From positions 186,001 to 250,000 of the IMG/VR virus record IMGVR_UViG_3300033997_000243: 64,000 bases of DNA; one strand, written 5' to 3'. This document shows positions 14,664 through 36,748 of this stretch, piece by piece. The notes below the pieces were generated by a model. That model worked only from the letters and a program-made list of their open reading frames with translations. It did not search any database and was not told where the DNA came from. The position numbers were made by a program, and so were the translations under genes. Numbering within the stretch: the first letter of the stretch is position 1; every line of letters begins with the position of its first letter.

Positions 14664-16127
14664 ATGGTACGTGCAACAAATTTAAGTAAAGCCGTTGGGT
14701 TCCAACAACACGTAAATGCCATACTAGAAGATTTCAAAAAAGAATATGTGTGGGCCGATAAAGAAAAAAGTAGTTTAGCAATTTTCCTTGTAGATGCTTT
14801 GGCTGGTATAAGTGAAGTTGGACAAACCCACACAATGTTTGCGCTGCGTGAAGCATTTTTAAGAAAGGCCCGAAGAAATAGTAGCATTCTTGCTAACGTA
14901 AAGTTCTTGGGCGTAGAGTTATCAAGAAAAAGTGGATCAGCTACTTTAGCAAACTTACGCAATAACAGTGATACTTCTATACCAGTCGGAGCTTTCACAC
15001 AATTCTCTATTGGTGGCAGAAATTTCTACAACAGTCAAGGTTTCGTACTTGACGCAAAATCAAATAAAAGCGTTGTGCTGAAACAAGGCACGGTGGCAGA
15101 GAAGAATTTCAATTTAGCCAATTACGATCTTACATTTCCCGAAATATATTTAGGTGTTCCAAACTTCATTGTTTCATCAGAAGATCTTCAGGTTCGTGTA
15201 ATAGAATCGAATGGTGTAAGTACGTTGTGGACAAAACATACTGACACACTCTACGAAATGCGCCCTACCTCCAACAGTTATATTGAAAGCACAACTGAAA
15301 ATGGTGATGTTAGTTTTCTGTTTGGTAATGGTACTTATGGACGTAAACTTCCGCCAGATGCAACATTAAATGTTCGTTACATTATTAATGAAGGTGCTGT
15401 TGGTAATATCGGAAGTCCAGGTTCTCGCGTTACCGTAAATACAATTGGTGCTATAAGCGGTGTAACTGAAGAAGCAGCTGTTGGTGGATCTGATCAAATT
15501 GATTCAAATTTTTATAAATTGTATGGATCAAGTTTGTTTGAATCTCGTGGAACATTAATTCGTCAAGCGCATTGGGATGCACTGCAAAGTAGTTATCCTG
15601 ATATAGCGGATTTAGTTGTTCAGGGACAAAGAGAATTGGCTCCAGACGATCCAAGCTGGATGACTACAGTACGTCTTTGTGTGCTGCCAAAAAATAGTAG
15701 CAGTTGGGGCGGTTCAAACCCTAACCCTCAATCTGCTCAGTGGTCGCGCTTTTTAAGTTATGTGCAAGCTCGTTGTGGCAAACTTACTTTGGTGCCACAC
15801 AATCCAGAAAAAATTCTGATAGATGTATTGGTTGATGTTTATATATTTGACGACCAAGATGCCAGTTTAATGGAAGCTACTTTAACAGAAGTAGTTAAAA
15901 AGTTTTTCAGTCGTCGTACTGGAATACTTGGCCGCAAATTTGTTCCAAGCAGCGATTTAGGTGACAGCATCAAATATGAAGCTGATGGATCTAAACGCGA
16001 AGGAATAGATTATATTACTATTCTTCAACCAGACAGACCAATAACACCTGATTCTAAAGTTGCGTATGTTACACCACGTTCAATTAAAGTGCGTGTTAAA
16101 TATACTCAACGTAAACGGGATGCGTAA
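14664..16127 (+). CDS. baseplate wedge protein (gp6 / baseplate J-like)
   Basis: EAFL..ARR.SSI, FG.G.YG..LP, Y....G..GN and GGSD motifs; synteny. Confidence 0.85.
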   Translation: MVRATNLSKAVGFQQHVNAILEDFKKEYVWADKEKSSLAIFLVDALAGISEVGQTHTMFALREAFLRKARRNSSILANVKFLGVELSRKSGSATLANLRNNSDTSIPVGAFTQFSIGGRNFYNSQGFVLDAKSNKSVVLKQGTVAEKNFNLANYDLTFPEIYLGVPNFIVSSEDLQVRVIESNGVSTLWTKHTDTLYEMRPTSNSYIESTTENGDVSFLFGNGTYGRKLPPDATLNVRYIINEGAVGNIGSPGSRVTVNTIGAISGVTEEAAVGGSDQIDSNFYKLYGSSLFESRGTLIRQAHWDALQSSYPDIADLVVQGQRELAPDDPSWMTTVRLCVLPKNSSSWGGSNPNPQSAQWSRFLSYVQARCGKLTLVPHNPEKILIDVLVDVYIFDDQDASLMEATLTEVVKKFFSRRTGILGRKFVPSSDLGDSIKYEADGSKREGIDYITILQPDRPITPDSKVAYVTPRSIKVRVKYTQRKRDA

Positions 16128-23201: not shown

Positions 23202-24725
23202 ATGGATGATATTACAATTCGTATTGAAGCATTTGAAAACAGATCTGATCTTGATGGAGCAAGAGCAAAAACTTCAGAATTCGGATCAGATGTTGCTTTC
23301 GTACAAGTAGAAGAACCAGATCCGCTTAATATAAAATTTGCGTACAATGCCCAATCAGGTGTTTTATCTTTAATCCGTGGGCCTGATGATATTATTCAGG
23401 CCACTGGTTTTCTTACGCAAAAAAGTTTGGGAACTGGAAGAAGAGGAAAGAAAGGAAAAAGAGGCAAAGACGGTCGTGATGGGAAAACTGGTTACGATGG
23501 TCGTGATGGAAAATCTGGATGTCCTGGAATTCAAGGTGTAAAAGGAAAGAAAGGACTTCCAGGTCGTGATGCTGATGATGGCCCAATTGGGCCAATAGGT
23601 AAAGCTGGTTGTGGTGGTGCTGAAGGTGAAGAAGGTGAAAGAGGAAATAAAGGAATAATCGGCAATGAAGGATCTCAAGGTTTAATGGGATCTAGTTGCA
23701 AGCAAGGGCCGGATGGCCCTGACGGTGAAAAACCTTTGGAAACAGTTTTATTTTCTGACGTTCCACCAGTAGATAATCTGCTTGCTTTTATTTGGGCAAA
23801 ACCTGTCAACAGAGATCAAGTAGATCCAACAGATCCATTGCCGCCAATAGATACTCCGTCACCTTTAAATGGAAGAGTAGATAGTTTATCAATGAATGTT
23901 CCTCCGGTCGGTGCTGGTTGGTATCAAGCAATTCTTTATTTTAAAGTGAATTCTTTAAGTGGTGGAGTTGGGCCTTTTAACTATAAATGGTCTGGTGATT
24001 TTTCGACAAACGCAAATCTTTCAGTAGTTGATACTGGAATGACATCTGCAAACTTGAATTTGAAGTGTAGAATTTATATTGCTGGAACAGAAACCAGAAA
24101 AATTACTGGTGGAATTCGTTGTACAGTAACAGACGTAGGTAACGGCAACAATCCACTACTGTTAGATGCCACTTACACATTCAACATTGTTGCGACGGCT
24201 TCTGGAGGCGGTGACAGTGGAGGCGGTGGTGGAGGCTGTATCGTTTTTGGTCAACGTGTTAATTTAGTAAATGGTGAGCAAATTCAAGTTCAATCTATTT
24301 TACACGGTGACAGTTTAATCGGCGCAAGCATAGAAAGTTTGCCGGACAGCTCTAATGGAAACTCTAAATTTTTAGATTGGTTCACTTCTGATCTTAAATC
24401 GAAAAATACAACTGTCACGGCTATGTCTGTTAAACACGGAACTTACCATAGTTACTACAAAATAAATAATGTTTTGAAAATAACTTTGGAAGAGAACATG
24501 CTTTGCTTGCGCGGAGGCTATTGGTCTTTTAGACGAGTTAAAGATCTTCGTGTTGGAGACTATTTATATCATCGAACAGAAGGTGCTAAAGAAATTCTCA
24601 GCATTGAACAAATAAGTGAACAAGTTAAGACAGTATCTTTAGATGTTGAGACATCAGACACTTACTATGTTGAAGATTATTTAGTTCACAATCTGGATGT
24701 CGGTGGGCCTGTGATTAAGAAATAG
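23202..24725 (+). CDS. collagen-like tail fibre protein with a C-terminal Hint domain
   Basis: about 33 Gly-X-Y triplets, a beta domain, poly-Gly linker, then CIVFG...LVHN. Confidence 0.8.
   Translation: MDDITIRIEAFENRSDLDGARAKTSEFGSDVAFVQVEEPDPLNIKFAYNAQSGVLSLIRGPDDIIQATGFLTQKSLGTGRRGKKGKRGKDGRDGKTGYDGRDGKSGCPGIQGVKGKKGLPGRDADDGPIGPIGKAGCGGAEGEEGERGNKGIIGNEGSQGLMGSSCKQGPDGPDGEKPLETVLFSDVPPVDNLLAFIWAKPVNRDQVDPTDPLPPIDTPSPLNGRVDSLSMNVPPVGAGWYQAILYFKVNSLSGGVGPFNYKWSGDFSTNANLSVVDTGMTSANLNLKCRIYIAGTETRKITGGIRCTVTDVGNGNNPLLLDATYTFNIVATASGGGDSGGGGGGCIVFGQRVNLVNGEQIQVQSILHGDSLIGASIESLPDSSNGNSKFLDWFTSDLKSKNTTVTAMSVKHGTYHSYYKINNVLKITLEENMLCLRGGYWSFRRVKDLRVGDYLYHRTEGAKEILSIEQISEQVKTVSLDVETSDTYYVEDYLVHNLDVGGPVIKK
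24237..24692 (+). other. Hint (intein-like) domain 1
   Basis: block A C-I-V-F-G; block F/G VSLDVE...YYV..YLVHN; residue after HN is Leu; block B His replaced (TLEE). Confidence 0.85.
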
Positions 24726-24736
24726 GTAGGTATTTT

Positions 24737-25381
24737 ATGTTGACGAAAGTTCCAACTAAATTAATTTCAGCGCCTCAAGGAACAAACGGTCAAAGTCTTG
24801 TTGTTCAGGATAAAAGAATAACAGCTCAATCTACTGCAACTCAAACAGTTTCACCTATAGAAGATTGGTTTTATGATGCAAGCGTTGGTGTTCTCACAAT
24901 TCGTTTGTTGAATGGAACAACTCAAACTTTAGGTGGATTTCCAATATTATCTGATATTCCTGAAGGCCCACAAGGAGCACAAGGAGAACCAGGAATTGAT
25001 GGAAAAGATGGTCGTGATGGTCGTGATGGTCGTGATGGCGAAGCTGGTTGTGTAGGTGCAGCTGGTGAAAAAGGTGATGACGGTGATGATGGCCGTGACG
25101 GATTAGAAGGGCCAGTTGGCCCACCAGGTATTCAAGGATGTGAAGGCCCAAGAGGAAAACGTGGGCCAAAAGGTGAAGATGGAGATCAAGGCCCACCTGG
25201 AAAACAAGGTCTTCCAGGAATTGAAGGGCCACCTGGAAAAATGGGAAAACAAGGGCCACCTGGAAGAATAAATATTATTGTAAGTGAAACTGATCCAGGT
25301 CCAAGTTTAGGTAATGGTGGAATTTGGGTTAATCCTTTAATTGGTCAGATAGATGATGATACTGATCAATTTTTTACGTAA
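24737..25381 (+). CDS. collagen-like fibre protein
   Basis: about 33 Gly-X-Y triplets; (GGTCGTGAT)3 DNA repeat; C-terminal DPG...G.IWV. Confidence 0.85.
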   Translation: MLTKVPTKLISAPQGTNGQSLVVQDKRITAQSTATQTVSPIEDWFYDASVGVLTIRLLNGTTQTLGGFPILSDIPEGPQGAQGEPGIDGKDGRDGRDGRDGEAGCVGAAGEKGDDGDDGRDGLEGPVGPPGIQGCEGPRGKRGPKGEDGDQGPPGKQGLPGIEGPPGKMGKQGPPGRINIIVSETDPGPSLGNGGIWVNPLIGQIDDDTDQFFT

Positions 25382-25393
25382 GGAATTTTTAGC

Positions 25394-25888
25394 ATGAGTG
25401 GTTTAACAAAATTAAACTTATCTATGGTAAGTCCACCACTTCAAAATGGCGGAGTTATTGCGTCAGGCCAAAGTCTCACTGTAGATCCAAAAACAATAGA
25501 TCTTTCTGAATTTAGTGGCTACTATGATCGTACACAAGGAATACTAACTTTAAATATTCCTACGATTGGAAAAATTAATATTGGAAATTTTCCAACATCT
25601 GCGGATATTGGTACAGGACGCACAGGGCCAAGTGGTCGGGATGGTGTAGCAGGTGTTGATGGTTTAATCGGTGAAACTGGTCAAAAAGGTTTGCAAGGTT
25701 GTCGTGGGCCAGAAGGCCCACAAGGTCGTCAAGGTGAACGTGGGCCGCGAGGTCTAACTGGGCCGCAAGGTGAACAAGGTATTCAAGGTATTCAAGGCAA
25801 TGACGGTCGTGATGGACGAGTTTTAATTTTTGTTCAAAGTGAAGATCCCGGAAGCGTTGGGGCTGGTGCGCTCTGGGTACGGCCCTAG
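25394..25888 (+). CDS. collagen-like fibre protein
   Basis: about 22 Gly-X-Y triplets; paralogous N- and C-terminal caps. Confidence 0.85.
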   Translation: MSGLTKLNLSMVSPPLQNGGVIASGQSLTVDPKTIDLSEFSGYYDRTQGILTLNIPTIGKINIGNFPTSADIGTGRTGPSGRDGVAGVDGLIGETGQKGLQGCRGPEGPQGRQGERGPRGLTGPQGEQGIQGIQGNDGRDGRVLIFVQSEDPGSVGAGALWVRP

Positions 25889-25945: not shown

Positions 25946-26410
25946 ATGAAACAACGCAAATTATTTCTACAATCTAGATCGTCTGAATCAGTTGAAAATT
26001 TCATTCAGACAGTAAATTCTCTGGCTCTTAATATGCGTAAAGAACTAAAGAAATTATTTCCAAAATTTATTACGGATGTTCGGGTAAGAAATGACGAGTT
26101 AGGTCGATACATTCTGATTGATTTTATAAATGTAGATCCAAGCGAAGCAACAACTCGTAATAAAGAGGAAGCCAGCGCTAGATTCAGATTTATAGTAAGC
26201 TTTGCTGATTTTATGAATAATCCAAATTCAGTTAAAGGTTTTGAAGTAGAGCCTTTAATGGGTGTGAAAATTAAACATACCAAACATGGATTAGATTATA
26301 AACATATCTCAGATAAAGATATGGGTCGAACACTAGACTTACTGTTAAGCTGGTTTAAATCTCAACGCAACGCCCTGAACAAACTGACACCGAAAGATAA
26401 GGATTTATGA
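25946..26410 (+). CDS. hypothetical protein, paralogue of 26407..26889
   Basis: LFPKF, IDFIN and WFKSQ..AL..L shared with the neighbour. Confidence 0.7.
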   Translation: MKQRKLFLQSRSSESVENFIQTVNSLALNMRKELKKLFPKFITDVRVRNDELGRYILIDFINVDPSEATTRNKEEASARFRFIVSFADFMNNPNSVKGFEVEPLMGVKIKHTKHGLDYKHISDKDMGRTLDLLLSWFKSQRNALNKLTPKDKDL

Positions 26411-26889
26411 TGAAACTTTTCTCGCTATGTATGGATTCACAAACACTGACAAGTTTATCCTTGGATGCAGCTGAAGCCAAATTGAATGCTGAAAATGCTT
26501 TGGAAGAATTCAAGAGCAAAATGAAAATTCTTTTTCCAAATTTTATGCTCAGCGCTAAAATCAAAAACATAATGTCTGGTGAATCACTTGTAATTGATTT
26601 CGCAAATATCTCTGACAAAGATCAGGCTCCACATGGAATTCTTCACAATGTTAGCGGCTTCTTCACAATCATAATGGATGTGAATTACAGCGGTAAAATG
26701 TCGAAACCTATAGAAACATTTCAGATGGAAATGATTCGTGGTGGTGTAAGTCGTAGAGTTCAAAGTTACGGTGTTAAACAATTCAGAAAAATTTCTGGTA
26801 ATTCACCTAGCGAATGTTTATCAAAATTGTTTAAATGGTTTGAGAAAAACGCTGAAGCATTACGCAGTTTGCCTGTTAGCGTTTATTAA
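26407..26889 (+). CDS. hypothetical protein, paralogue of 25946..26410
   Basis: LFPNF, IDFAN and WFEKN..AL..L. Confidence 0.7.
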   Translation: MMKLFSLCMDSQTLTSLSLDAAEAKLNAENALEEFKSKMKILFPNFMLSAKIKNIMSGESLVIDFANISDKDQAPHGILHNVSGFFTIIMDVNYSGKMSKPIETFQMEMIRGGVSRRVQSYGVKQFRKISGNSPSECLSKLFKWFEKNAEALRSLPVSVY

Positions 26890-30311: not shown

Positions 30312-33300
30312 ATGGCAGGAACTCCATTCACAACTATTTACGAAAATTTAGGATCTAATGCGACAACTGTTCCTGGAATTTCGTGGAAGTTTGACCATGA
30401 ATACATTATCTACACGATTGAAAGAAACGCAGATGATGAAGTAGGTGTTGTTTATATAAATACACATGCGGCTTCTCTTCGAGCTATTGATCGTGGATTT
30501 TTAGCTGTAACGGTTGACGCATGGATTGTTCTTGATCGTCAAACAATGCAGATTAAAAGCGAATCACGTAAAGGTGATGCTTGTCCAATTTTAAAAGTTT
30601 TAGAGCGCCCGATTACAGTTGGCGTATCGGACTTTACTTCAGAAAATTGGGAAGTTTATTATTCAGGCCCTGGAGTTGTACAATTAAATATTGACTGGCC
30701 TGATGATTATGAATACGTTATCTTTGTTCACGCAACAGAGCCTCCTGGTCGCTATCCAGATCTTAAGTGGTCTATATGCGCTCACTTCTTTTGTCCGGCA
30801 GCAATGAATGCGAGTGATATAAATGGCGGTGGTTATTTAAAACCGATTGAAGGTGCGTCAGGTGTAATGATGTATCGTGGTCGGTTTTCTAGTCCAACTG
30901 GCAGACATATTCGTAGATTCGACAAAGGTGATGGTTTAATAGCGTATATACTTCGCAGAAAATTTAGAACTGATACCAAAGCAACAACTGAATTTAATAG
31001 TTGGAAGCAACACACGTTTGCACTTCCTAATGGCATACAAGCTGGTGGAAATTGGCGTGATGCTAAACCTTATGCTTGGCCTGATGATACTGAAATAATG
31101 GTAGTGTCACAAGATCCTAAAGGTAGCACAGAAATGGCTACTTCTTATTATTTCACAGATTCAAACATTCAGAATACAACTCAAATAAATTGGCGTGAAC
31201 GCGGTTTATTGTATGATGCGGGTTATGATCATTATATAGAGTTGTTGAAACCTATTTGGCAAAACCGTGGAACCAAACATATCCGTTCAAGTGATGGAAG
31301 AATTTTTGCAGCGTGGGAAAAACTACCCACGTTAGATGTTCCACCGCCAGAACCTCCACCGCCAGTTGATCCTGTAATTGATTGTCGCGCTTGCGTACCA
31401 GCTGGATCTTTGTGGGAGCAAACTGCAAGTATTGAAGTTCGTTTTGTTAAGCCTGATGATTGGCAATTACGCAATTATCGCTATGATTGGCACGGTGACA
31501 TCGGCAACGGTTCTGTGGAATTAATTGGAACCGAAGCTAATGGAAGAATTGCAAAAATTCGTTTTGTAAAAATGTTAGAACCTACCGATGATGGAATAAT
31601 GTTTCCTATCAATGTGGCGGTTACAGTTTATGATATGGATTATGCTTCGGCTGGAGTACAAGATAGTGATACAGCAATCATCGAATTTGAATTACCTTGT
31701 ATTGTAGTGGCGAATCAGCCGGATATAAGTATAGAGGATATTACTGTACTTGAGCAAGACATCAATCATGTCGTACAGGTTACAGTTTCTTTGTCTGAAC
31801 CAGCAACTGCGGAAGCACTAACAGTAGATTGGCAAACTCGTGATGGTACTGCGAAAAGCGATCTGAGTGTTAAAACACTTGCTAGGGATGATTTAGGTAA
31901 TCCATTTATAACCGTTATAGAAAGTTTAGATAGTAAAGTCAGGACTTATATAGATGGTTGTTTTCCAAAATGGTATGCTGCAAGTTTTTACGACAGATTG
32001 AATACACCTAAATTTCAAACAACATTTTTATTCACGCAAAACATAATTAACTGGTTATCCAGAAATAAAGTTGGAGGTCAAGTTTTATTATTAGGTGATA
32101 AGACGAACGATCCTTACAATGTTAAACTATCTAACGCAAATGATTTTTTCCCTGTATTCGATGCCGCAGCAACAGCCACAGGAAGAACTTTAGTTGTTGA
32201 ATATGTCTATGATATAGTTCCATCTAAAGCATATTTCGATTCCTTCGATTGCATTATTTATATAGGCAGTCACTATACAGGCGATCAAGTTAATTCACCT
32301 GAATTTATTACTGCACTTGTAGAAAGTCATTTAGGTGGAATCGGAGCAGCATTTATATCTGATCATGGTGTTGATGATATTAATGGGGCTGGTTTTTTCA
32401 AAGGCGTTAATGAAGTTTTGATCAATGCTTTTGGTATAGGACTAAAGGGCAATATAGATCGCGGATCTATGGTACTTACTGTGGAAAACGCAAAAGCTAC
32501 TTTAGGTGATCATCCATTGTGGGCCGGATTAAGCGGCCAAATAGATGCAGGATCTTCAGAAGCGTATGTTGATGCAATAGATAGTGAACCGGATTATATA
32601 AGTGGTCGAGGAACTTTAGTCTTTGCTGTCGGTGAGCAACACAAAATAATCGAGGTTACAATTGTTGGTGATACTACAATTGAGAATGACGAATATTTTG
32701 AAATAATGATCTCGAATAATAGTCGAGGTCAGATAGTAAAAAATGTTGGTCGTGTTACACTTCAAGATGATGATGCTCAACCTTGCGGTGTCACAACAGG
32801 ATCTGGTGGTACTGGTGTCACAGAAACAGTTCATAATATGGGATCTGAATCAGGCCAAGTAACAGTTGGTTTTGATATGTTCGGTGTTCCAGATATGATG
32901 GAAATTTTTTACGATGGAGTACGCGTAGCCGCAACAAGCAGAGATTTAAGTAATCCATACCCAAGTGGAACTGGACGCTATTACAATCTTCCAAATGGAA
33001 ATAAAGATCTTCCAACTGAAGTAAGTGGTGCTGGTACTCTATCATTTTATTATGAAGGGCCACCAAACAAACCTTCAACAATCATGATTCGTATGACTGG
33101 GCCAGACGGAACTGCATGGAATTACAATTTAGATTGTCCGATTCCTGTTGAGGAGCCGCCACCGCCAGCAGTAACAATTGCTGGAATAAGATTTAGAAAT
33201 TTAGATCCAGCACCTGGAGCAGGAGCAATTGCAATAGGTTATATTGATTTTATAAAATCGGATAGCACTATTTACGATTTTGGTAATGTACTGCAAGATA

Positions 33301-34226
33301 ACTATGTAAATTGTACTTTTGAGCATGGATATACAGAAGGACAACCTGTGCAATATCAAAATAGTTATAAGCCGCGTCAAGCAATTAATGGCTATCAAGA
33401 AGGATCTCAATGCAGTCACCGCGATTACTATGGCCCATTCACAAATGATGCGTACTTATTAATTCGTTTATCTCAAATGACGGATATAATAGGTTTCAAC
33501 ATGATGGATTGGCATTATTGTAATGACAATGGCGCTCCAGTGTTTCGCGCTCCAGCACTTCCATACAGCATAGATCTTTTAGATCAAAATGATAATGTGA
33601 TTTGCACACAAACAGTAACAAGTTATGTTAGTCCGGCGGCAGATACAGTTGGTTACGTTCCAATACAATTCCCTTGCGATCCTGTAATTGGTGGAACAAG
33701 TGTAGGTGGCGGAAGTGCAGATTGTTTTGCATACGGAACTTTGATAACTATGTCTGACGGTTTTGAAAAAGAAATCGAAGATATTGTTATTGGAGAAACA
33801 GTTAAAACTTTTTCCATAGAAGGATTAACTGATGCAAATGCTGAAAATCCTGTGGACTATTTAACTTGGTCAACTTACGATCTGCAAATAAAAGAATCTA
33901 CTGCCGCAGTAACATCAGTTTCTTATCACGAAACTAATCTACATCATAAGATTTGGATAGAAGGCAAAATAGATCCTATAAGGGTCACTGCGGAACATCC
34001 ATTCTTAGTTAAGTTTTCTGATAGAAATGATTGGGTATTTGATTACGCTCGTTATCTTAAAGCAGGTGATACTGTTTTAGATTCAAGTGGTCGGCAAATA
34101 AAAGTTCTATCGAATCAATTGATATACGGAAATATTAAAACTGTCCGTCTGGATGTTGAAACGCTAGATACTTATTTTGCTGGTGGAATTCTTGTACACA
34201 ACAAAGATACTACAATACAACAGTAG
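30312..34226 (+). CDS. multidomain fibre/adhesin protein with a split Calx-beta domain and a C-terminal Hint domain
   Basis: Pro linkers; ISIEDITVLE..DGTAKS / DY..G.L.FA.GE..K.I.V.I.GD...E.DE.F; ends CFAYG...LVHN. Confidence 0.8.
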   Translation: MAGTPFTTIYENLGSNATTVPGISWKFDHEYIIYTIERNADDEVGVVYINTHAASLRAIDRGFLAVTVDAWIVLDRQTMQIKSESRKGDACPILKVLERPITVGVSDFTSENWEVYYSGPGVVQLNIDWPDDYEYVIFVHATEPPGRYPDLKWSICAHFFCPAAMNASDINGGGYLKPIEGASGVMMYRGRFSSPTGRHIRRFDKGDGLIAYILRRKFRTDTKATTEFNSWKQHTFALPNGIQAGGNWRDAKPYAWPDDTEIMVVSQDPKGSTEMATSYYFTDSNIQNTTQINWRERGLLYDAGYDHYIELLKPIWQNRGTKHIRSSDGRIFAAWEKLPTLDVPPPEPPPPVDPVIDCRACVPAGSLWEQTASIEVRFVKPDDWQLRNYRYDWHGDIGNGSVELIGTEANGRIAKIRFVKMLEPTDDGIMFPINVAVTVYDMDYASAGVQDSDTAIIEFELPCIVVANQPDISIEDITVLEQDINHVVQVTVSLSEPATAEALTVDWQTRDGTAKSDLSVKTLARDDLGNPFITVIESLDSKVRTYIDGCFPKWYAASFYDRLNTPKFQTTFLFTQNIINWLSRNKVGGQVLLLGDKTNDPYNVKLSNANDFFPVFDAAATATGRTLVVEYVYDIVPSKAYFDSFDCIIYIGSHYTGDQVNSPEFITALVESHLGGIGAAFISDHGVDDINGAGFFKGVNEVLINAFGIGLKGNIDRGSMVLTVENAKATLGDHPLWAGLSGQIDAGSSEAYVDAIDSEPDYISGRGTLVFAVGEQHKIIEVTIVGDTTIENDEYFEIMISNNSRGQIVKNVGRVTLQDDDAQPCGVTTGSGGTGVTETVHNMGSESGQVTVGFDMFGVPDMMEIFYDGVRVAATSRDLSNPYPSGTGRYYNLPNGNKDLPTEVSGAGTLSFYYEGPPNKPSTIMIRMTGPDGTAWNYNLDCPIPVEEPPPPAVTIAGIRFRNLDPAPGAGAIAIGYIDFIKSDSTIYDFGNVLQDNYVNCTFEHGYTEGQPVQYQNSYKPRQAINGYQEGSQCSHRDYYGPFTNDAYLLIRLSQMTDIIGFNMMDWHYCNDNGAPVFRAPALPYSIDLLDQNDNVICTQTVTSYVSPAADTVGYVPIQFPCDPVIGGTSVGGGSADCFAYGTLITMSDGFEKEIEDIVIGETVKTFSIEGLTDANAENPVDYLTWSTYDLQIKESTAAVTSVSYHETNLHHKIWIEGKIDPIRVTAEHPFLVKFSDRNDWVFDYARYLKAGDTVLDSSGRQIKVLSNQLIYGNIKTVRLDVETLDTYFAGGILVHNKDTTIQQ
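33723..34202 (+). other. Hint (intein-like) domain 2
   Basis: block A CFAYGT.I.M.DG..K.IEDI..G; block B TAEHPF; block G LVHN; residue after HN is Lys. Confidence 0.9.
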
Positions 34227-34323: not shown

Positions 34324-34545
34324 ATGCCAAAGGCAGTTGTTTTGAGAGTCAGGGACGTTAAAAACGTCCTTGATCCTTTTCATATAAAGAATTTTCATTT
34401 AGGTGGCTGGCGTGTTCGTCATGAAAACAAATGGATCAGAATGGTTCCAGAAAATACTCTGATTAAAAATCCAGATCATGATCCGGCTGTACACGCACCA
34501 GATGATACTGAATTTCCGTTATATACACAGGTGGTATCAGAATGA
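34324..34545 (+). CDS. small virion-associated protein (start MPKAV)
   Basis: GGGAG SD; R..N.W pattern like the N-terminus of 26910. Confidence 0.55.
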   Translation: MPKAVVLRVRDVKNVLDPFHIKNFHLGGWRVRHENKWIRMVPENTLIKNPDHDPAVHAPDDTEFPLYTQVVSE

Positions 34546-35315
34546 TAACTAGACTACCTTTAGCAATGATCAACGCTGGATCAACAAGTTTAGCAGGACA
34601 AAATGTTACAGTTGTTCAGCCGGGAGTATTAGCTGCACAAGATCCGTCTGCAACTGTTCAACCTGCTGTTATACAAGGAACGTATGACGCGGATAGTGGA
34701 ACAGTTACAATAGTCAATGCTGATAATTCGATAGTTTTAATTTCTGGTTTTCCAACAATAAGAAGTTTACCAACTGGACAACGTGGGCCAGAAGGTAAAC
34801 AAGGTATTTCTGGAGTAGCAGGAAGAAATGGTCGTGATGGTCGTCCTGGAGAACAAGGTTGTCCTGGAGTAAAAGGTGATCGTGGCTTGCGAGGCCCAAT
34901 TGGGCCAGAAGGCCCACGAGGGCCGCAAGGAGAAATCGGCCCCAAAGGTGACAAAGGTGACAAAGGTGACAAAGGTGATGCAGGTATTGATGGCCTTGAA
35001 CCAGAATATGTAAAGACAAGTCGTGGAGCATCTATTTATTTACAAAGAAGCGGTGGAACAATTCAAAGTGGATTTTTTGAAAATGCTCTACAAGACAGAA
35101 CAATAACTTTACTGTTTCCGAGAAATTTAATAAACGGTGTTGTAAGTATTGTATTGTTCTTTAAGAATCCAAGTAGCTACCAAGCTCTGAATTATGAAAT
35201 AGGTGAATATTTCTACGATGATTTAGAAATTGGTGGTGTAACAATAACTCTTAAAGGAACTCCACCTGCACAGCTTGAGCCTTGGCAGTTCTGGTGGTTT
35301 GTAATGGGCGATTAA
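34542..35315 (+). CDS. collagen-like fibre protein with a C-terminal globular domain
   Basis: about 25 Gly-X-Y triplets; (AAAGGTGAC)3 repeat; shared N-cap. Confidence 0.85.
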   Translation: MITRLPLAMINAGSTSLAGQNVTVVQPGVLAAQDPSATVQPAVIQGTYDADSGTVTIVNADNSIVLISGFPTIRSLPTGQRGPEGKQGISGVAGRNGRDGRPGEQGCPGVKGDRGLRGPIGPEGPRGPQGEIGPKGDKGDKGDKGDAGIDGLEPEYVKTSRGASIYLQRSGGTIQSGFFENALQDRTITLLFPRNLINGVVSIVLFFKNPSSYQALNYEIGEYFYDDLEIGGVTITLKGTPPAQLEPWQFWWFVMGD

Positions 35316-35833: not shown

Positions 35834-36748
35834 ATGGACACACTATTAATAGGGCTAGTTAGTGAGTGTTTGAGTAAAGCTGTAGCTTTGGGACTGACGG
35901 CATCCAATAAAATAGTTTTAGCTGTAGGATCTACACAAAACGAAACAGCTTTAATTTATGTCAGTGCTGTTGAACCCACTGGGCCAGAACTTCCACTAAA
36001 TTTTATGTGGATAGTTTCAGATTCTAACAGTGCAGATTATCAGAAGATTCTGAGAAGAACTTCAAAGACTGCAAACTTTCCTTACCAAAATACTTACGAA
36101 TATCCAACGGTATATGCAAACGTAATAAATACATTTCCTGTATATGATGCTGTTGACGGTTTTATTCGCCCTGCATTAGAAAATCATAGATATTCTGTAG
36201 GAAATGCTCATGCTGCTACTCCAACTCAAATTGGAGCAGTTAATATAAATGGCGATACAATGCTTGGCAGTTTAAAAGCCAGAGCAAATTGGAGATCTGT
36301 TCCATTACAACCAGAAGAATTTATTCCTCTGCAAAAAATGACAGATAGCCTTAATAGTCAGACTCAAGGCTTTTACACTATTCTAATGCAGTTATTTAAT
36401 AGAATAGGTGCAGTAGAAACAACTAACGCTCAGTTAGCTCAAAGAATTACAGCTTTAGAGACAACTGGTGGTGGCCAAATAGATCCAAATCTTGTTCCAC
36501 GTACTTATGTACATGAACAAGCAGAAGCAGAACCTACTTGGATTATAAATCACAATCTAGGTACTCAATTCTTAATTGTACAACATTGGGTTCATATTAA
36601 TACACCTGATGGGATAAAATTGGAATTGGCTGGAGCGGAACAAGTTGTTATAGTAAATGACAATTTTGTTTTAATTGATCATACGATACCAGCAACAGGA
36701 ATAGTTGTGTTGTTGGAAGCAGGGTTAGAAGTAGTTCCAGAGGAATAA
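35834..36748 (+). CDS. virion structural protein with H.Q...W.I.HNLG domain
   Basis: GN.H..TP.QIGA..GD.M.G.L fibre motifs, coiled coil, HNLG domain. Confidence 0.65.
   Translation: MDTLLIGLVSECLSKAVALGLTASNKIVLAVGSTQNETALIYVSAVEPTGPELPLNFMWIVSDSNSADYQKILRRTSKTANFPYQNTYEYPTVYANVINTFPVYDAVDGFIRPALENHRYSVGNAHAATPTQIGAVNINGDTMLGSLKARANWRSVPLQPEEFIPLQKMTDSLNSQTQGFYTILMQLFNRIGAVETTNAQLAQRITALETTGGGQIDPNLVPRTYVHEQAEAEPTWIINHNLGTQFLIVQHWVHINTPDGIKLELAGAEQVVIVNDNFVLIDHTIPATGIVVLLEAGLEVVPEE

Follow-up and report, generated by a model that had tools for sequence, protein, structure and literature searches.

Does a Hint domain that lacks the catalytic His of block B still process itself when it sits at the very end of a phage tail fibre? 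The question is raised by an open reading frame (ORF) at positions 23202-24725 (+) of the window, by which we mean the whole 64,000-nucleotide stretch of DNA that was analysed, bases 186001-250000 of the 319,518-bp IMG/VR record IMGVR_UViG_3300033997_000243; all coordinates below are those of the window. The record has direct terminal repeats and a GC content of ~37-38%, and represents a jumbo myophage related to Erwinia phage Y3, Yoloswag, Dickeya phage AD1 and phage NCTB, with the gene in question lying in the baseplate/tail module. Its product is a collagen-like tail-fibre/virion protein of 507 amino acids (aa) with a C-terminal Hint module, and the full-length protein matches phrog_38766 'virion structural protein' (expectation value, E, 1.4e-70). 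We consider it on balance probable that the last 173 residues form an A-type-BIL-like autoprocessing cassette on the distal end of the fibre, and that its chemistry has been retained but rewired in a clade in which Glu replaces the block B His. To our knowledge, the self-removing C-terminal domains of phage fibres are known only as S74 chaperones. The present analysis points to a second and chemically different self-removal system, namely a predicted BIL-type Hint cap carried on a flexible Gly tether. Its main value lies in a large and biochemically unexplored family of phage structural proteins that bear a Hint cap, together with a natural His-less variant that is under strong constraint.

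A predicted Hint domain closest to characterised BIL domains

A sequence-only reading of this locus had placed a Hint domain behind a poly-Gly linker on a collagen fibre, quoting the strings GGGDSGGGGGG, Cys, TLEE, VHN and LDVGGPVIKK, all of which are present in the translation of 23202-24725. In order along the protein, these strings belong to a Gly-rich linker (GGGDSGGGGGG, aa 335-345, 24204-24236 (+)), a 152-aa Hint (BIL-like) domain running from Cys346 to Asn497 (24237-24692 (+)) and a 10-aa C-terminal tail (LDVGGPVIKK, aa 498-507, 24693-24722 (+)) that starts with Leu498 at the +1 position. Both linker and tail have a predicted local distance difference test (pLDDT) score <50. The tail is followed directly by the stop codon at 24723-24725, and the next gene begins at 24737. 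Gly345 is the -1 residue of the predicted N-terminal scissile bond. Cys346 (24237-24239 (+)), which is residue 1 of the Hint domain and the predicted nucleophile of the N-S acyl shift, is invariant both in an alignment of orthologues (A1) and in an alignment of 99 C-terminal domains (A4) that comprises seven members of the window group and 92 others. Block G ends the domain with His496-Asn497 (24687-24692 (+)), the predicted site of Asn cyclisation, which forms part of V-H-N at aa 495-497 and is invariant in A1.

Direct searches with the Hint domain gave weak matches. Pfam hits to Intein_splicing (E 0.013) and PT-HINT (E 0.13; 12.9 bits vs a cut-off of 27.7) were sub-threshold, and phmmer against PDB sequences reached E 0.07, so that profile and structure searches were needed. 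AlphaFold2 (AF2), given 99 homologues, models aa 335-507 with a pLDDT of 89.1 and a predicted template modelling (TM) score, pTM, of 0.85. Foldseek returned 58 PDB matches to this model at E <=1e-3, all of which are BIL domains, inteins or Hedgehog proteins. The top match is BIL2 of Tetrahymena thermophila BUBL1 (6y75/6tmm; 8.5e-9, probability 1.0) and the next is the BIL domain of Clostridium thermocellum (2lwy; 1.3e-7, TM 0.81 normalised by target), both of them ranked ahead of inteins and of Hedgehog (1at0, E 4.2e-5). The family profile searched against PDB sequences gave the same two leaders, with BIL2 at 6.7e-18 and 2lwy at 1e-15 over near full length vs 1.5e-10 for the best bona fide intein. 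The sole entry between the BIL domains and the inteins in the profile ranking is a 1368-aa 'Intein C-terminal splicing domain-containing protein' (8w20/8w22, chain A residues 1083-1223), which matches at 2.4e-11 and thus better than any bona fide intein.

The Hint call is therefore borne out by the AF2 fold, by Foldseek, by the family profile and by a paralogue in the same genome that passes the Pfam PT-HINT cut-off. Judged from the predicted model, we regard membership of the C-terminus in the Hint superfamily as settled and far beyond chance. The fold and Cys1 are present while the TxxH of block B is absent, Thr428 being kept and His being replaced by Glu431. As some natural inteins also lack the block B His (PMC7664689, PMC6333167), TLEE does not bar superfamily membership. 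The features of an A-type BIL domain are likewise found, namely Cys346, His496-Asn497 and the non-nucleophilic Leu498, and both the profile and Foldseek rank characterised BIL domains above inteins and Hog domains among its matches. From its sequence it is best filed as a predicted A-type-BIL-like autoprocessing cassette, an assignment made from motifs and from the profile and Foldseek rankings.

A family of C-terminal cassettes on phage structural proteins

An exhaustive profile search found 5871 related proteins at E <=1e-3, 1615 of them at E <=1e-10, vs just four with a word-index homologue search. Motif states were tallied on the best 152 of the 5871 relatives, among which 122 domains are complete. 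Cys1 is present in 121 of these, His-Asn in 121, the block B Thr in 108 and the block B His in 104, and 93 of the 122 stop no more than 15 residues from the C-terminus of the protein. Among strictly C-terminal copies, 71 of 97 have at least four Gly in the 11 residues ahead of Cys1. The bodies that precede these 97 copies range from ~15 to 1466 aa; collagen occurs in 15, and two members consist of little beyond the Hint domain. Additional relatives lie on 21 IMG/VR viral contigs, in proteins of up to ~2700 aa and with Gly runs of up to 12 before Cys1, and the matches in BFVD are proteins of uncultured Caudovirales. All contexts that were examined are viral, comprising 54 phage records and the 21 viral contigs. 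Thousands of metagenomic structural proteins, apparently encoded by phages, carry the domain. As read from these sequences, the succession of Gly run, Cys, Hint, His-Asn and a tail of 3-20 residues is a portable C-terminal cassette of phage structural proteins.

The residue that follows Asn is informative in this regard. Across the 122 complete domains, the +1 position is most often Ala (27), Lys (22), Leu (14) or Val (12), and is nucleophilic in only nine (Ser 7, Thr 2), with Cys never occurring. A missing +1 nucleophile defines BIL domains, whose products come mainly from cleavage and not from splicing (PMC7664689). The earlier statement that Leu at +1 bars canonical (class 1) splicing holds, as Leu498 is confirmed and Cys, Ser and Thr are all absent from that position. 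Since a non-nucleophilic +1 residue is the rule in this family and a trait of BIL domains, Leu498 is ordinary rather than aberrant. The earlier interpretation as a whole is therefore partly supported: a Hint domain of the BIL kind, Leu at +1 and a His-less block B all stand.

It is very improbable that the domain is instead an ordinary mobile intein, or a pretoxin-HINT domain that releases a C-terminal toxin, even though the weak Pfam matches and the paralogue above the PT-HINT cut-off point in that direction. Only 10 residues follow Asn497, which leaves no toxin domain or functional C-extein, and no downstream domain joined by frameshift or readthrough was seen between the stop codon and the next gene. 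An intein is further opposed by the +1 Leu, by the lack of a homing-endonuclease insert in a mini domain of 152 aa, and by the placement of the module at the C-terminus of unrelated bodies rather than as an insertion at a conserved site of a host protein. A true intein and PT-HINT toxin release were accordingly rejected on architecture (10-aa tail, +1 Leu, C-terminal placement). A Hedgehog-type sterol reaction was rejected on the same ground, given the invariant His-Asn and the mere 10 residues that close the protein after it.

Two further arrangements were noted within the family. Four metagenomic proteins (P0005, P0017, P0048 and P0093) have tandem Hint domains joined as HN-[K/R]-C-C, and many internal copies in such tandem-Hint proteins lack the block B Thr and His; these proteins could be polyprotein-like arrays. 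Another member, P0031, adjoins an S74-bearing gene.

A clade with Glu in place of the block B His

The claim that block B reads TLEE instead of TxxH was accurate. T428-L-E-E431 (24483-24494 (+)) lacks the His, and the A4 alignment and the profile both place its second Glu, E431, at the catalytic-His column, which aligns through the profile with catalytic H69 of BIL2. In A4, 99% of the 92 other domains have His in this column and all seven window-group members have Glu; the block B Thr is found in 97% of the 92. Two viral contigs add Glu members, L013 (98% Hint identity) and L014 (41%, on a 286-kb contig), and the resulting nine Glu domains form one monophyletic clade with a FastTree support of 0.998. 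The existence of a single Glu clade implies that the His-to-Glu change happened once. Orthologues outside the clade, from Erwinia, Dickeya and Yersinia phages and from NCTB, keep T-H/P-E-H or T-E-Q-H. From these alignments, TLEE is a derived state and a genuine clade-specific departure.

The rest of the active site has been maintained. Over 36-98% identity to the window domain, the nine clade members share invariant Cys1, Thr94, Glu96, Glu97, Glu149, Asp152, His162 and Asn163. A further residue, His457 (24570-24572 (+), profile position 123), accompanies E431, with His in 9/9 Glu domains vs 7/122 His-type domains in a tally that takes the window domain from A4 and the eight further Glu domains from a separate table. 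As the Glu clade is monophyletic, this co-variation of Glu431 and His457 counts as one event. Comparison of Hint codons between the window and L013 gave 15 synonymous and no non-synonymous differences (synonymous divergence, dS, 0.18), from which strong purifying selection on the Hint domain follows; the ratio of non-synonymous to synonymous divergence (dN/dS) for the neighbouring beta-sandwich in the same pair is 0.16.

The position of His457 was also viewed in a split-domain model. When folded as two chains, the Hint domain reassembles with an interface score (ipSAE) of 0.87 vs 0.00 for the best control, the mark for this score being one that solved complexes reach in 58 of 80 cases and mismatched pairs in 2 of 110, counts that apply only approximately here since a custom alignment was used. 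Partner pLDDT is at least 83 and at least 88% of contacts agree between runs. In this model the strand immediately after block B, 100-102, has strand 119-122 as its pairing partner, an arrangement that would put His457 one or two register steps from Glu431.

Several observations weigh against a still-active domain in this clade. The Ssp DnaB intein needs its block B His when the -1 residue is Gly (PMC6333167), and the product of 23202-24725 combines Gly345 at -1 with the absence of that His. His457 (residue 123) is not among the touching residues of either E431 or Cys346 in the split-domain model, and purifying selection is also compatible with a purely structural role. Phage NCTB encodes, directly after its collagen-Hint gene, a free-standing 153-aa Hint-fold protein (BN7874_135, L001:9482-9943) that has kept His-Asn and has neither Cys1 nor TxxH, which suggests, as far as its sequence tells, a non-catalytic use of the Hint fold in the NCTB phage group. 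Additionally, the conserved tail (Asp499 and Lys506, described below) is not accounted for by simple cleavage and discard, and the literature searched contained no proteomic or biochemical study of any orthologue.

These points bear on a specific alternative, in which the Hint domain of the Glu clade is catalytically dead and stays in place as a distal knob of the fibre that serves in binding or spacing. This alternative draws on the pairing of a missing block B His with Gly at -1, which abolishes the N-S shift in Ssp DnaB (PMC6333167), on the degenerate NCTB protein as an instance of non-catalytic use, and on the fact that zero non-synonymous changes would fit any folded functional domain. 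A dead domain would be expected to relax at Cys1 and Asn, as the free-standing NCTB copy has relaxed at Cys1 and block B, but all nine members, down to 36% identity, keep Cys1, the block B Thr, His-Asn and the two acidic residues of block F. Moreover, the replacing Glu is itself invariant across the clade, and the Gly tether and short tail are kept just as in His-bearing relatives. We therefore regard a dead Hint domain as unlikely. The "inactive variant" allowed for by the sequence-only reading is likewise disfavoured, given Cys1, Thr, HN and the acidic residues in 9/9 members and no non-synonymous against 15 synonymous changes.

The retention of all other catalytic residues over deep divergence instead favours a chemistry that is retained but rewired. 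The few natural inteins that work in the absence of the block B His do so via compensating residues (PMC7664689, PMC6333167). In the window clade, His changed to Glu once and a His was gained at position 457, with the chemistry probably retained under a different mode of activation; the reaction may perhaps be slower or dependent on conditions. The clade can be read as a natural experiment in which the superfamily's most conserved catalytic residue was changed, His to Glu, with Gly at -1 kept. If the Glu variant is active, it would represent a new way of driving an N-S acyl shift and a possible tool for making protein thioesters.

Predicted processing and the fate of the Gly thioester

An autoprocessing module, as predicted by the earlier reading, is the best-supported interpretation on the basis of fold, motifs and family architecture. 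The fold, the family, the motif states, the architecture and the clade structure were observed or computed, as was purifying selection; the cleavage, its timing and its products are inferred by analogy with known Hint proteins. After folding, Cys346 would attack the carbonyl of Gly345 in an N-S acyl shift to yield a Gly thioester, and cyclisation of Asn497 would cut the Asn497|Leu498 bond. The thioester could then be resolved by water or by the freed amine of the tail peptide, the latter being a BIL-type ligation that involves no side-chain nucleophile. The mature fibre would thereby lose the 17-kDa Hint domain and end in its Gly run, to which the decapeptide may or may not be joined. Being flexible, the Gly tether may let a monomeric Hint domain fold beside a multimeric stalk, and the carrier would be a collagen-like tail fibre or a 'hair' protein.

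The tail beyond Asn497 has conserved features of its own. Orthologue tails follow the pattern x-D-x6-K-x, with Lys506 in 11/11 and Asp499 in 10/11 (Val in NCTB) of the A1 sequences, while the +1 residue varies among L, R, A, T, M and V. The median tail length of the 99 tails in A4 is 7 aa. Either the last or the penultimate residue is Lys in 50 of these 99, vs an expectation of ~9% from composition; 12 of the 58 ORFs of the AT-rich window also have Lys in their last two positions. Among relatives on viral contigs the penultimate residue is Lys in 20 of 21. Counted from the C-terminus, the tail Lys keeps a fixed position in every orthologue and in roughly half of the family (24693-24722; A4; L016-L033).

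This Lys raises another possibility, which is that the cassette is a conjugation device of the BIL2/BUBL kind in which a Lys epsilon-amine captures the Gly345 thioester to give an isopeptide-capped or covalently stapled fibre tip. The amine could come from Lys506 in the tail of the same or a neighbouring chain, or from a Lys of another virion or host-surface protein. In BIL2 the thioester is passed to a Lys of the protein's own C-flank, which yields an isopeptide without other enzymes (PMC8616854), and as BIL2 is the closest solved relative the ligation idea has a concrete precedent. The best structural and profile match thus forms a Lys(epsilon)-C-terminus isopeptide (PMC8616854), Lys506 is conserved in every orthologue, Lys is enriched at the end of family tails, and an oligo-Gly C-terminus is ubiquitin-like. 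Nonetheless, the Lys position is set by the C-terminus and not by the active site, and the tail is predicted to be disordered. Proteins of AT-rich genomes also often end in Lys, the counted sequences are interrelated, and BIL domains mainly just cleave (PMC7664689). We hold such a conjugation device to be improbable. It is quite improbable as well that the protein carries a virion conjugation cassette in which the Glu431/His457 rewiring makes Lys capture of the Gly thioester conditional. If the thioester does pass to Lys, the outcome would be a new kind of virion cross-link and the first Hint-mediated enzyme-free ligation in a virus, in parallel to BIL2/BUBL.

Comparison with known self-processing domains

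BIL domains reportedly cleave with some ligation by aminolysis, in work attributed to Dassa et al. in 2004 and Aranko et al. in 2013. The chemistry expected of A-type members comprises N- and C-terminal cleavage, with some ligation by aminolysis (PMC7664689). The window domain resembles the C. thermocellum BIL domain in its Hint fold, Cys1, block B Thr, C-terminal His-Asn followed by a non-nucleophilic residue and lack of an endonuclease, and A-type BIL domains in general in being located in a non-conserved part of an extracellular or structural protein. Unlike the C. thermocellum domain, it has Glu in block B, is strictly C-terminal with a 10-aa flank, follows a long Gly run and is carried by a collagen-like phage fibre. 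It shares with BIL2 an N-flank that ends in Gly and a non-nucleophilic +1 residue. BIL2, however, is eukaryotic, keeps the block B His (H69, which is Zn-switched) and has ubiquitin-like domains on both sides, whereas the C-flank of the window domain is a decapeptide.

The Hog domain of Hedgehog (1at0) is also a C-terminal Hint domain from which the N-terminal part is detached at Gly|Cys via a thioester, as is predicted for the window domain. Hog domains are not known to perform a terminal His-Asn step; their reaction relies on an extension that recognises sterol, and cholesterol acts as the nucleophile. The window domain differs in its invariant His-Asn and in having no sterol-recognition extension. 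A functional analogue is provided by the intramolecular chaperone Peptidase S74, which forms the C-terminal domain of trimeric phage fibres and endosialidases (for example, T5 pb1) and is self-cut after assembly (PMC7824862, PMC4690869). The resemblance is one of function only, as S74 is trimeric, uses a Ser-Lys dyad and is unrelated to Hint in both fold and chemistry; Pfam detects no S74 domain in the product of 23202-24725.

Among phages, the closest comparison is with Y3_110 of Erwinia phage Y3 and BN7874_136 of NCTB, which occupy the same gene position and share with the window protein the order of N-terminal domain, collagen, beta-sandwich and Hint, a tail ending in Lys-x and 30-33% identity. 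Both keep a T-x-E/Q-H block B, and the +1 residue is Thr in Y3, Yoloswag and AD1. Most annotated orthologues lack the long Gly run and a 12-aa insert that follows the first hairpin of the window protein. Y3_110 and BN7874_136 have already been annotated as 'putative phage tail protein, contains intein domain', so that the domain as such had been noticed before. The published accounts of AD1, PaBG, CBB, MIJ3 and phiCbK and a jumbo-phage review do not mention it, and the literature searched contained nothing relevant on Hint or BIL domains of phage fibres and no biochemistry of the cassette.

Architecture of the fibre protein

The protein starts with an N-terminal beta domain (aa 1-76, 23202-23429 (+)), for which AF2 predicts strands over aa 20-68 at pLDDT 56-75 and which is presumed to be the virion-attachment end. 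This N-terminal module is common to the shorter collagen paralogues, with 37% identity to a 214-aa paralogue over aa 46-202. A collagen GXY stalk follows (aa 77-177, 23430-23732 (+); Pfam Collagen E 8.9e-14 over aa 79-128 and onward). In A1 every third column of the stalk is an invariant Gly, and Cys107 and Cys166 are invariant as well. The stalk and linker have low pLDDT in the monomer AF2 model, as is expected for a monomer.

Between the stalk and the Gly tether lies an all-beta domain of ~115 aa (aa 218-333, 23853-24200 (+)), a beta-sandwich modelled at pLDDT 74-94 and containing the motif GGxGPFxYxW. Leads to its identity are weak (Pfam SprB-repeat, E 0.081; Atlas PKD/Big, PKD/Ig-like, scores <=0.82). 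With so confident a globular domain ahead of the Gly tether, the Hint domain follows this domain and not the collagen itself. Of the arrangement first proposed, a Hint domain behind a Gly linker on a collagen fibre, the collagen and the Gly linker both stand, and the part to be amended is the placement directly behind collagen.

Genomic context

Orthologues of 23202-24725 occur in 54 phage records. A Megablast search with the gene found nothing among 50,697 phage records, and relatives are found at the protein level only. Gene order is conserved in Erwinia phages Y3 and Yoloswag, Dickeya phage AD1, NCTB, Yersinia phage fHe-Yen9-02, Alcaligenes phage Afa-NA1 and one metagenomic contig. Y3 and AD1, cultured jumbo members, are 'hairy Myoviridae' whose hair proteins are still to be assigned (PMC6143709). 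The Hint-capped proteins include tail-module proteins of such 'hairy' jumbo myophages.

In the window the gene is part of a co-directional tail module. Upstream of it are a baseplate wedge gene (phrog_219) and genes for a 1551-aa tail protein (phrog_14098) and a 784-aa protein; downstream are two collagen paralogues, two small ORFs, a 1119-aa protein, a 1304-aa Calx-beta/Hint protein and a terminator-like hairpin. This hairpin (34348-34374 (+)), with a 12-bp stem and a following T run, is the strongest terminator-like element of the region and comes after the second Hint gene; it is probably the end of a long co-directional tail operon that starts near 14664.

The second Hint domain (33723-34202 (+)) is canonical, with Cys...TAEHP...HN and the tail KDTTIQQ, and is 32% identical to the first (E 7e-17). 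It forms the C-terminus of the 1304-aa Calx-beta protein (ORF 30312-34226 (+)), with GGGSAD preceding its Cys, and is the paralogue that passes Pfam PT-HINT (31.8 bits vs 27.7) with a tail of just 7 aa. These two are the only Hint domains in the 319.5-kb genome. NCTB and Yoloswag encode orthologues of the 1304-aa protein that bear the annotation 'large intein domain protein', and phrog_26008 is matched by both the 1304-aa protein and the 1119-aa ORF upstream of it.

Four collagen-like paralogues are encoded at 23202-24725, 24737-25381, 25394-25888 and 34542-35315. They share the N-terminal module and an 'IW..P' motif after the collagen, and Cys residues are conserved within the GXY run. Three collagen-like genes are adjacent in every relative, and a hetero-oligomeric stalk in which a single chain bears the head and the Hint domain is conceivable.

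The two small ORFs, 25946-26410 and 26407-26889 (+), are overlapping tandem paralogues (27% identity, E 6e-11) that match neither PHROG nor Pfam. The pair sits between the collagen genes and the 1119-aa gene and is not there in Y3, AD1 or the Yersinia phage. A 304-aa ORF in the tail module, 35834-36748 (+), matches phrog_24148 'HNH endonuclease' (3e-28), a label that looks doubtful in this context; in Yoloswag a similarly annotated gene comes after the collagen genes.

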